A stretch of DNA of 64,000 bases, taken from sequence record LT603033.1; one strand, given 5' to 3'. The position numbers and the translations under genes are program-made. The notes under the pieces are model-generated. The model saw only the letters and a list, made by a program, of their open reading frames with translations, had not been told where the DNA came from and made no database searches. Shown here in pieces: positions 602-15,979 of the stretch. Each line of letters opens with the position of its first letter. The stretch's first letter is position 1.

Positions 602-1006
602 ATGGTAAGTTTACTAGATATTGATAATACCAGTTTAGTGCTGGTGAAAAAAGGTTTAATTCCAAATTCTAAAAAAATTGATTATGCTGTTATTGAAACA
701 AATATTGGAAATATCTGGTACGACTCTGAAAGGGATATTGTGTTTAGCTGTGTAGACAGTGATCGTTCTGAATGTTGTAGAGTCGGTCATGACGGACAAT
801 TTGTTTTTGAATTTCGTTATTGGAAGGACGCAAAATTTCACCAAGAACTGGTTGCTTTGTCAAATGAACTATATACAGAAGAATCGTTCTTCATGGCTAG
901 TACTATTAATGATTTTGGTTCAGTTACATTTGAGTACTATAAAAAAATATACGCACTATCCAGAGAAGTTATGAAAATTATCAGAACTGCTGAAGGTAAA
1001 GAATAA
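602..1006 (+). CDS. FQ-motif family protein
   Basis: TEESFFMASTINDFG; abuts previous ORF. Confidence 0.75.
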   Translation: MVSLLDIDNTSLVLVKKGLIPNSKKIDYAVIETNIGNIWYDSERDIVFSCVDSDRSECCRVGHDGQFVFEFRYWKDAKFHQELVALSNELYTEESFFMASTINDFGSVTFEYYKKIYALSREVMKIIRTAEGKE

Positions 1007-2928: not shown

Positions 2929-3789
2929 ATGAAACCTATCCGAGTACTTTCTCTTTTTAATGGAATGAGTGTGGGATATATGGCATTGCAAGATGCTGGT
3001 ATCCCAGTTGAAAAATATTATTCATCCGAAATTGATAAGTACGCAATAGCTGAATCTCAATCTAACTTTCCTGATATTATCCAATTGGGTGATGTAACTA
3101 AGTGGAGAGAATGGGATATTGAGTGGGACAAAATAGATTTATTAATGGGTGGTTTCCCATGCCAAGCCTGGTCAGTTGCAGGTAAACAGGGTGGTTTAAA
3201 TGATATACGTGGGCAGTTATTTTTAGTAATGGTTGAAATTTTTGATCATATCAAAAGTCTCAATCCTAACTTGAAATTTCTGTTTGAAAATGTTAAAATG
3301 AAGGAAGATTTCAAAGAATACATTAATAGTATTTTAGGAATCACGCCAGTACTGATAAACTCCCAGCATTATACGCCTCACTTCAGGCAGAGATATTACT
3401 GGTACAGTACTGATAAGCTTTTTATACCACCTGCATTATCCAATGCACCTAAACTTCAAGATATTATTGAAGATGGTTGGTACACTGACAGAACCGCTTC
3501 GTACTGTATAGATGCTAACTATTTTAAAGGTGGTGATTGTAACCAGTACTTTAATAAATCCAGACGACAATTGGTGTTTCGTGACCCAGTGATCAGTCGT
3601 CAATATCTATTAGAGAATGGCAAAAGAAATATTGACTATAGACACTTAAGTGTAGTAGAATGTTGTAAATTACAGGGTGTTCCTGAAGATTTCTTTAAAG
3701 TGTCTAGTAAGACACAAGCATACAAAATGCTTGGGAATGGATGGACTATGCCAGTTATATCACATTTACTAAGAGAGATATTCTTTTGA
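2929..3789 (+). CDS. DNA (cytosine-5) methyltransferase
   Basis: Motif I VLSLFNG, catalytic GGFPCQ, FENVK, RQRYYW, C-terminal KMLGNGW in canonical C5-MTase order. Confidence 0.92.
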   Translation: MKPIRVLSLFNGMSVGYMALQDAGIPVEKYYSSEIDKYAIAESQSNFPDIIQLGDVTKWREWDIEWDKIDLLMGGFPCQAWSVAGKQGGLNDIRGQLFLVMVEIFDHIKSLNPNLKFLFENVKMKEDFKEYINSILGITPVLINSQHYTPHFRQRYYWYSTDKLFIPPALSNAPKLQDIIEDGWYTDRTASYCIDANYFKGGDCNQYFNKSRRQLVFRDPVISRQYLLENGKRNIDYRHLSVVECCKLQGVPEDFFKVSSKTQAYKMLGNGWTMPVISHLLREIFF

Positions 3790-12387: not shown

Positions 12388-12562
12388 GACATTTGATGAG
12401 TGGTTTAATCTACACTATAATATAAATGCAGCAGATATATACTATTTTAAGCTTGAATTGTATATATCATTGCGTAACCCAATTGAGTACTATAACAACA
12501 TTATCAATTGTGATGATTTTGGTACATATTTTAGTATAGCCGTTATGGATATTAAGAGATGA
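12377..12562 (+). CDS. small hypothetical protein, distantly MTHEEW-like
   Basis: N-terminal KTFDEWF; coupled both sides. Confidence 0.6.
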   Translation: MQPKTFDEWFNLHYNINAADIYYFKLELYISLRNPIEYYNNIINCDDFGTYFSIAVMDIKR

Positions 12563-12738
12563 CACATGAAGAATGGATGGCAATGATGAAAAAACGTTAT
12601 GACCAGTTTGGAAATGGATTTATTGATGGTCATTTCGATATTTTACGAGACAAATATAAGTTCGAATCATATGTACTAGATGAGAATGGAAATCGTTGGT
12701 TCATCTATGAGCTTGCGGTTAGAGACAAAAAAATATAA
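12559..12738 (+). CDS. MTHEEW-family microprotein (59 aa)
   Basis: MTHEEWMAMMKKRYDQFG...WFIYELAVRDKKI; read by hand. Confidence 0.7.
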   Translation: MTHEEWMAMMKKRYDQFGNGFIDGHFDILRDKYKFESYVLDENGNRWFIYELAVRDKKI

Positions 12739-12750
12739 TAACCTTTTCCA

Positions 12751-12816
12751 TTGTCCATTGCAATGCTTTCTTTACAGAAGAATAAATGAAACACTTAATT
12801 GAACTGGATACATAAA
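12751..12816 (+). pseudogene. relic 3' end of the 13119..13334 gene
   Basis: Near-identical to 13270-13334 but with in-frame TAA. Confidence 0.55.
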
Positions 12817-12993
12817 ATGACACACAAAGAATGGATAGAGTCACTAAAATATAAACATGATCATTTTGGATTTGGTATACGCCAAGGCCATTATGATGTT
12901 TTGAACGATAAAAAAACGTTCGAATCCTTGGTTTTGGACGAAGATTCCAACCACTGGTTCATCTACGAGCTTGCTATTAGAGATAAAAAATAG
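12817..12993 (+). CDS. MTHEEW-family microprotein
   Basis: MTHKEW...WFIYELAIRDKK. Confidence 0.7.
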   Translation: MTHKEWIESLKYKHDHFGFGIRQGHYDVLNDKKTFESLVLDEDSNHWFIYELAIRDKK

Positions 12994-12998
12994 TAAGA

Positions 12999-13334
<336 letters not shown>

Positions 13335-13335
13335 A

Positions 13336-13518
13336 ATGACACACGAAGAATGGATGTCCAAACAGCATAAAGAACATGACTGCTTTGGGAATGGCATTCG
13401 TCAGGTACATTATGATATATTAAGAGATGAAAATCTTTTCAGGTCATATGTTTTGGATACCAGAAAACCCTGGTTTATATGCGAACTGGCATTTAGAAAG
13501 TCAAATAATCAAAACTAA
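13336..13518 (+). CDS. MTHEEW-family microprotein
   Basis: MTHEEW...PWFICELAFRK. Confidence 0.7.
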   Translation: MTHEEWMSKQHKEHDCFGNGIRQVHYDILRDENLFRSYVLDTRKPWFICELAFRKSNNQN

Positions 13519-14006: not shown

Positions 14007-14333
<327 letters not shown>

Positions 14334-14341
14334 AAAAAAAG

Positions 14342-14755
<414 letters not shown>

Positions 14756-14812
14756 CTAAATAATTCAGTACCAAGGAGATTAATATGTTTAAAGATGAAC
14801 GTCCAGATTTGT

Positions 14813-14850
<38 letters not shown>

Positions 14851-14856
14851 GAATTC

Positions 14857-15198
14857 CACAATCAGACGTATATGGTGTAAGTTACGTCGATGCAATCCAG
14901 AACAAGATCTCTGGTACTCTAGGAAGTGGTGAATGTTAACCTAGACGGGTTTGATAATTGGACGATAGGCAATTATTACTTGACTAGCAGGTTTAAACTA
15001 GAGGTGATAGTCCTTCACCAAACTGGAAAACCGGATGGACTTTTATTTAAAAGGGTAAGGCGTGGAAATATGTTTACAGAAGTTGCTTTTAGTAGCCTGT
15101 ACGCCCCACGTCAAGGTAGCCGAAAGGCAAGTTAAAACGGGTGGTTATAAAGCTGAATTAACAGCGGCGTTTAAAAGCGTCACCATCCATTTTTTTTT
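14857..15198 (+). ncRNA. candidate structured ncRNA (about 340 nt)
   Basis: Own promoter, GC-richer, many helices, ends in structure plus T-tract; no credible RBS/ORF. Confidence 0.55.
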
Positions 15199-15214
15199 AA
15201 TTAAAGTTGGTGAT

Positions 15215-15979
<765 letters not shown>

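Follow-up and report, generated by a model that had tools for sequence, protein, structure and literature searches.

Two neighbouring non-coding RNA genes within the tRNA region of a jumbo phage

Does the structured stretch of about 340 nucleotides (nt) in the tRNA region of Escherichia phage vB_Eco_slurp01 encode a single large RNA, as an earlier note proposed, or something else? We addressed this question in a window of 64,000 nt of record LT603033.1, which matches the slurp01 genome (LT603033, genus Asteriusvirus, a 348-kb RaK2-like jumbo phage) at 100% identity and with identical coordinates. The stretch lies in a region with seven tRNA genes between 13.0 and 17.1 kb. We find that the stretch is non-coding and structured, but that it is a composite of two neighbouring RNA genes, RNA-A and RNA-B.

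The sequence features described in the earlier note, a promoter, paired helices, a T-tract and a rise in G+C content, are all present in the DNA, and its observation is confirmed. The promoter at 14822-14850 (TTGACT, a 17-nt spacer and TATAAT with a TG extension) scores 11/12 in a promoter scan and is a perfect copy of a phage-specific promoter class, CAGTACTG-N-TATAAT, which occurs at 21 sites in the window against 1.4 expected. The promoter of the next tRNA operon, at 15595-15623, has the same extended -10 element. A run of nine T residues at 15190-15198 follows a GC-containing stem, GGGTGGT/ACCATCC, and the G+C content is 0.37-0.415 across 14800-15199, as opposed to 0.255-0.33 in the flanks. 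Every helix that the note listed is present, and all are kept in relatives except GCC-GAAA-GGC, which is present but never varies and is thus neither supported nor refuted. Single-sequence folding energy is only weakly better than that of shuffled sequences (z-scores of -1.70 for the whole stretch, -0.92 for RNA-A alone and -2.75 for RNA-B), so the case for structure rests on comparative data.

No Rfam 15 family accounts for the stretch. Apart from tRNAs, nothing in the window matches at a gathering score, and no family reaches even E = 1 inside the element, where the best matches are 12.5-17.3 bits at E = 6.5-9.9. Scans of six homolog loci returned only tRNAs and chance hits, and ARAGORN finds neither a tmRNA nor a tRNA in the element.

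Similarity searches split the stretch in two. Bases 14852-15040 match, at 85-91% identity, an unannotated gap of ~190 nt between tRNA-Gly and tRNA-Asp in the T4-like Bragavirus phages of Proteus, Morganella and Shigella. The same segment lies between tRNA-Leu and tRNA-Ser in a T5-like Proteus Novosibvirus, and a diverged copy lies between tRNA-Pro and tRNA-Thr in the T4-like Aeromonas phages 65, avDM6, CC2, P19, AP1, AS-zj and ZPAH1. In these phages the element starts on the base after the CCA of the upstream tRNA, a position with which the start predicted from the slurp01 promoter coincides. It ends 10-15 nt before the next tRNA in the Bragavirus and Novosibvirus copies, whereas in the Aeromonas phages a further conserved element of ~85 nt lies before tRNA-Thr. 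In RaK2, the two halves are separated by a 41-nt insert carrying a promoter (TTGAAC, 17 nt, TATAAT). In L022, a metagenome contig, the halves lie about 470 nt apart, and the order is promoter and RNA-A, promoter and another RNA of 158 nt, promoter and tRNA-Arg, promoter and RNA-B, and then an open reading frame (ORF). A second contig, L025, has two diverged RNA-A copies on either side of a tRNA-Arg. The position within a phage tRNA cluster holds in five lineages. In slurp01 the internal promoter is deleted, and the two RNAs are probably co-transcribed, such that a 340-nt precursor may exist. The features, all on the plus strand, are as follows.

14822-14850 (+), sigma-70-type promoter of RNA-A, with an inferred transcription start at about 14852.
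14852-15040 (+), RNA-A, a structured RNA gene of ~189 nt, with helices H1 14865-14870/14883-14888 (extended by 14862-14863/14889-14890), H2 14897-14901/14910-14914, H3 14918-14923/14940-14945, H4 14953-14960/14970-14977, H6 15003-15007/15015-15019 with a 7-nt loop, and H7 15023-15026/15031-15034, and an invariant UGG in the 3' tail at 15035-15040.
14856-14929 (+), pseudoknot PK-A, in which the 5' tail CCAC (14856-14859) pairs with GUGG in the H3 loop (14926-14929).
14978-15001 (+), pseudoknot PK-B, a compact H-type knot in which S1 is ACUUG (14978-14982) with CAGGU (14988-14992), S2 is CUAG (14984-14987) with CUAG (14998-15001), and the A-rich loop 3 is UUAAA.
15040-15053 (+), A/U-only hairpin linker (CUUUU-AUU-AAAAG) between RNA-A and RNA-B, without a promoter or T-tract and possibly, by inference, a processing site; RaK2 has a similar A/U hairpin, followed by the 41-nt insert that slurp01 lacks.
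15055-15198 (+), RNA-B.
15055-15112 (+), RNA-B 5' domain, in which GGCGUGG (15059-15065) can pair with ACGCC (15101-15105) or with CCACGUC (15106-15112), enclosing the hairpin 15076-15100.
15119-15128 (+), GAAA-tetraloop hairpin GCC-GAAA-GGC.
15139-15198 (+), Y-shaped intrinsic-terminator module, with the stem GGGUGGU/ACCAUCC (15139-15145/15182-15188), arms at 15152-15165 and 15166-15181, and a U-tract at 15190-15198.
15215-15604 (+), downstream protein gene (129 aa, phrog_38341), which is not part of the RNAs.

To evaluate the fold of RNA-A, we built a covariance model, R1, from seven close copies and a hand-drawn structure. The model recovers 17 full-length copies at 68-236 bits. On the resulting alignment, 96.0% of paired cells form standard pairs, against 26-39% when partners are slid by 1-3 columns, and 33 of 49 pairs show changes on both sides. 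The covariation score is 0.469, against at most 0.075 in slid controls, and none of 500 shuffles reaches the observed values. The nested helices were aligned with the model, and many copies are 85-99% identical, which looks like recent transfer, so that the number of independent lineages is about six rather than 17. Helix H7 is poorly kept in the Aeromonas copies. In contrast to the nested helices, the two pseudoknots were left out of the model, so the alignment could not have been fitted to them, and both hold. In PK-A, 95.5% of cells pair, and C-G switches to G-C in the Aeromonas phages (GCAC/GUGC); an IMG/VR contig has, by eye, CUAC/GUAG. In PK-B, S1 has four Watson-Crick variants at its two outer pairs, and S2 is 100% paired and shows a U-A to A-U exchange in five sequences (CAAG/CUUG). 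Invariant unpaired blocks cluster in the 3' half of RNA-A (CGGGWUUG, GACGAUA, CUUGAC, AGAGGU, CCAAAC and the 3' UGG), whereas three bases of the 7-nt H6 loop differ in almost every lineage.

Several other pairings and identities were considered for RNA-A and rejected. An acceptor-stem-like pairing of the 5' UUCCA with the 3' UGGA holds in the enteric copies (7 bp in one L025 copy), but it fails in the Aeromonas copies and competes with PK-A, which does covary. An RNase P-like P4 pairing between GAGGUGAUAGUCC and ACAGAAGUUGCUU is ruled out because the first segment forms the covarying hairpin H6. The H6 loop is not a tRNA-like anticodon loop, since position 33 is mostly A and position 37 is C.

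The part specific to RNA-B is its first 58 nt. Among the sequences examined there are three variants of the alternative pairings: GGCGUGG, ACGCC and CCACGUC in slurp01 and RaK2; GGUGUGG, ACACC and CCACAUC in L022; and GCUGUGG, ACGGC and CCUCAGC in Kuravirus, where a similar segment lies inside a long non-coding region. The first alternative is 100% paired and the second 92.9%, and each has two pairs with changes on both sides, which supports the hint of a switch in the earlier note. However, this evidence rests on six sequences from about three lineages, and in Kuravirus the second partner could instead pair downstream (CUCAG/CUGAG). The GAAA hairpin is invariant in the jumbo-phage copies and offers no covariation evidence. 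The last 60 nt form a 7-bp stem that closes two hairpins and is followed by U9 in slurp01, and the same three-way fold is predicted for six copies with different stem sequences (GGAUAGU/ACUAUCC, GGAUGAU/AUUAUCC). The module recurs after tRNA-Ser in RaK2, after tRNA-Arg in the relative L023, after tRNA-Ser in EJP2 (there preceded by the GAAA hairpin), and upstream of RNA-A in RaK2, and we read it as the terminator type that these phages use, with termination itself inferred from sequence. The U-tract is interrupted in RaK2 and L022, and a simple terminator scan did not call the module because its fold is branched.

Neither RNA shows evidence of coding capacity. Absence of covariation, or conservation of the ORF at 14926-15135 as protein, had been named beforehand as grounds for abandoning an RNA; covariation is present, and this 69-codon ORF is cut to 16, 5, 2 and 2 codons in RaK2, L022, PM2 and SdyM_006, although a 77-aa frame is open in the T5-like copy. 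The ORF has no Pfam or PHROG match. The GenBank "hypothetical protein" CDS at 15062-15604 is over-extended across RNA-B: the phrog_38341 profile aligns from residue 1 of the product that starts at ATG 15215, and the 51-aa extension matches nothing.

The RNA-A family appears to be small, with about 65 phage isolates, five metagenome contigs (two of them close slurp01 relatives and one RaK2-like) and one uncultivated IMG/VR contig; wider searches with looser patterns turned up no new lineages. The core motif is absent from 185,579 bacterial genomes, one per species, and the whole stretch has no match in 5,426 complete E. coli genomes, which argues against a host or prophage origin. In an all-against-all comparison of neighbouring ORFs across lineages, no protein family was shared, the only matches being spurious frames over RNA-A and the tRNAs. 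Both RNAs are accessory: in phAPEC6, another Asteriusvirus, the promoter and the first ~36 nt of RNA-A are fused directly to the downstream gene, and the rest of RNA-A and all of RNA-B are deleted in a viable phage.

What the analysis establishes, and what we hold with high confidence, is the anatomy. The 342-nt stretch holds two separate non-coding RNA genes, probably read in slurp01 from one promoter. The evidence for the structure of RNA-A is unusually good. RNA-A belongs to a previously undescribed family of ~185-200-nt RNAs that occurs only inside the tRNA gene clusters of virulent phages of Enterobacterales and Aeromonas (RaK2-like jumbo phages, two groups of T4-like phages, T5-like Novosibvirus and a few metagenome contigs), and it folds into six or seven hairpins tied together by two pseudoknots kept by selection. 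It has spread across unrelated phages and is dispensable. The remainder is inference from sequence alone, including transcript ends, stability, processing and function. In this view, RNA-A would be made early together with the phage tRNAs, with whose operon it shares its promoter class, and, where it lies between tRNAs, would be released by the tRNA-processing enzymes, RNase P at the downstream tRNA and endo- or exonucleases after the upstream CCA, to accumulate as a stable RNA acting in trans. Because it moves between phages that share no neighbouring protein gene, infects only gamma-proteobacterial hosts and is dispensable, we think that it most likely binds or sequesters a conserved host factor, probably one linked to tRNA or translation, such as a tRNA-directed defence nuclease or an RNA-processing enzyme, which would make it an accessory takeover or counter-defence RNA; alternatively, it may be self-sufficient. 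This mechanism is tentative, and the explanation as a whole is held with moderate confidence. RNA-B most likely acts as a separate small RNA whose bistable 5' domain is its working part.

The interpretation in the earlier note is therefore only partly supported: the stretch is non-coding, structured, equipped with its own promoter and terminator, and outside the Rfam families (including RNase P, tmRNA, group I introns, GOLLD, ROOL, 6S, riboswitches and ribozymes), but its reading as one ornate RNA of ~340 nt is not supported. In slurp01 and its closest relatives there is one promoter and one strong terminator, making a 340-nt primary transcript likely, but the separate promoters in RaK2, the wide spacing in L022, the occurrence of RNA-A without RNA-B in T4-like and T5-like phages, the reuse of the terminator module and the absence of any covarying pair linking the halves render a single functional unit very unlikely. 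A protein-coding reading can draw on the ORFs open in slurp01 and on the GenBank annotation, but it is already contradicted by the truncated ORFs, the compensatory substitutions in stems and the lack of profile matches. It is also unlikely, though less so, that RNA-B is a cis-acting leader (a riboswitch, thermosensor or attenuator) whose alternative helices decide between termination and read-through. Both helices are kept by compensatory change, a terminator follows directly, an ORF starts 17-30 nt later in slurp01, RaK2 and L022, and the T-tract is weak in RaK2 and L022, making read-through plausible. However, the downstream genes are unrelated, encoding the 129-aa phrog_38341 protein in slurp01 and a basic protein of 47-50 aa in RaK2 and L022; the switching strands do not overlap the terminator stem, with which they can form at most 4 bp; the terminator module is generic and also follows tRNAs; and the 5' domain occurs in a different context in Kuravirus.

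For RNA-A, a ribozyme or a small-molecule aptamer, for example a sponge for a signalling nucleotide, is possible but unlikely. The double-pseudoknot core, the invariant unpaired bases clustered in junctions, the absence of a conserved protein neighbour and a 5' end that abuts the CCA of the upstream tRNA favour such a role, but RNA-A matches no ribozyme or riboswitch family in Rfam, its promoter-driven copies need no self-cleavage to define their 5' end, and no gene association suggests a ligand or reaction. A base-pairing regulator also remains possible. That RNA-A is merely a cis-acting spacer that helps to fold or process the tRNA precursor is very unlikely: it always lies in tRNA clusters and fills the gap between two tRNAs exactly in T4-like and T5-like phages, but in the jumbo phages it is a stand-alone unit with its own promoter and no adjacent tRNA, the flanking tRNAs differ in every lineage, and its conservation is far above what a spacer needs. 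A more speculative and rather unlikely possibility is that RNA-A is the first recognised member of a class of mobile, self-contained phage RNAs that travel with tRNA genes between unrelated virulent phages and neutralise a host factor through RNA structure alone, as a decoy for a tRNA-directed defence nuclease or an aptamer that soaks up a defence signal. This would give a function to the stable RNAs of phage tRNA clusters, unexplained since the 1970s, and the hypervariable three bases in the anticodon-arm-sized H6 loop, set in an otherwise invariant 3' domain, would then mark an arms race.

Literature searches for the family or its conserved sequence strings found no description, although a 2023 catalogue of about 10,000 candidate phage RNA structures (PMC10690425) may contain it. 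Among known systems, PK-B has the geometry of compact H-type pseudoknots with an A-rich third loop, as in preQ1-I or SAM-II aptamers and viral frameshift knots (a 5-bp S1, a 1-nt loop 1, a 4-bp S2 and a 5-nt loop 3), but it is only a sub-domain of RNA-A, matches no family model, and has no gene downstream to regulate and no reading frame to shift. GOLLD and ROOL are likewise complex-folded RNAs of unknown function that often lie next to tRNA genes in phages and prophages, but they are three to four times larger and are known mainly from Firmicutes and environmental sequences, whereas RNA-A was not found in any bacterial genome searched; no match to them was found at E up to 10 for the element or E up to 1 for the homolog loci.

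The closest known systems are the stable RNAs of unknown function in the tRNA regions of T4 and T5. The T4 species 1 and species 2 RNAs (rnaC, rnaD) are small stable non-tRNA RNAs encoded directly after a tRNA inside the cluster, co-transcribed and cut out with the tRNAs, and like RNA-A they begin with AAU right after the preceding CCA. There is no sequence or structure similarity, however: model R1 finds nothing in the T4 tRNA region, rnaC carries a tRNA-like T-arm and acceptor end that RNA-A lacks, and RNA-A is longer and has two pseudoknots. In T5, eight annotated "stable RNAs with unknown functions" (RNAI, RNAIII, RNAIV, RNA1, RNA2, RNA2H, RNA3 and RNAX) are interspersed with tRNA genes and early promoters, and RNA-A occupies the equivalent region in the T5-like Novosibvirus. 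Several of the T5 RNAs are tRNA-like, which RNA-A is not; R1 with filters off scores at most 9.7 bits in the T5 tRNA region, in a match that lacks the core, and blastn with RNA-A finds no Tequintavirus. Stable non-tRNA RNAs have been known in the T4 and T5 clusters for about fifty years, but none has a known function and each is confined to its own phage group, which has made comparative analysis hard. In contrast, the same RNA-A occurs in jumbo, T4-like and T5-like phages, which gives enough variation to define a double-pseudoknot fold from sequence alone and shows that the RNA works independently of any particular phage proteome. A natural deletion mutant (phAPEC6) and carriers easily grown on laboratory E. 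coli (including slurp01, 121Q and PBECO4) make the question of its function testable.

In the window, there are at least five paralogous small ORFs of 54 to 66 aa (12559-12738, 12799-12993, 13318-13518, 14007-14171, and 14168-14332), which begin MTHEEWM and are interspersed with the tRNA genes. The tRNA-Ser at 15634-15725 has the unusual anticodon ACT (A34), whereas the equivalent gene in a metagenome relative (L021) that is ~98% identical has GCT, and the difference may reflect either a sequencing error or a real anticodon change. At 14752-14814, a degenerate second copy of the −35 region of the RNA-A promoter (TTGACTAAATAATTCAGTAC) runs into a strong Shine-Dalgarno site and a mini-ORF of 9 codons, which extends from ATG 14785 to TAA 14814 (MFKDERPDL).

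This segment of ~70 nt is absent from phAPEC6, in which a natural deletion (locus L031, 3032-3117) removes RNA-A from about nt 37 onwards and all of RNA-B. The deletion places the RNA-A promoter directly in front of the phrog_38341 gene, which then starts with GTG. In the window, the GenBank CDS PSLUR01_00042 (15062-15604) is over-extended by 51 codons across RNA-B, as the profile of the protein family starts at ATG 15215.

The Y-shaped terminator module recurs after tRNA genes; copies lie at 1939-1990 and 3592-3643 in locus L002, at ~1753-1821 in L023, and at ~1530-1583 in L026. In RaK2, a copy just upstream of RNA-A overlaps a promoter-like site (TTGACA, 17 nt, TATTAT), and the terminator and the next promoter may therefore be interleaved.

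In L022, a metagenomic RaK2-like phage, a promoter-driven RNA of 158 nt (604-761, minus strand), closed by a 19-bp stem (−48.5 kcal/mol), lies between RNA-A and tRNA-Arg; it has no homolog in the other loci, and a further stem-closed element follows tRNA-Leu. The T4-like phages of Aeromonas carry a further conserved element of ~85 nt between RNA-A and tRNA-Thr (2582-2667 in locus L004 and the equivalent in L012 to L017), which contains a CCUUCCUC motif and may be another small RNA.

The segment resembling the RNA-B 5′ domain is contained in a noncoding, highly structured region of ~650 nt in Kuravirus XT18 (locus L005, 2135-2800) and phage 1-6af (locus L027, 150-800). This region ends in a tRNA-like T-arm plus ACCTGTAACCA, with its 5′ partner TTACAGGT situated about 150 nt upstream. 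Neither ARAGORN nor Rfam calls anything in this region, but parts of it match N4-like phages, where they are annotated as tRNA-Cys or tRNA-Undet.

In several lineages, homing endonuclease genes (segD-like and HNH) sit next to the tRNA and RNA-A segments, occurring at 2335-2940 in locus L003, at 3799-4390 in L002, and as hegA to hegF in phage T5 (L030), and these genes offer a plausible route for moving RNA-A between phages.
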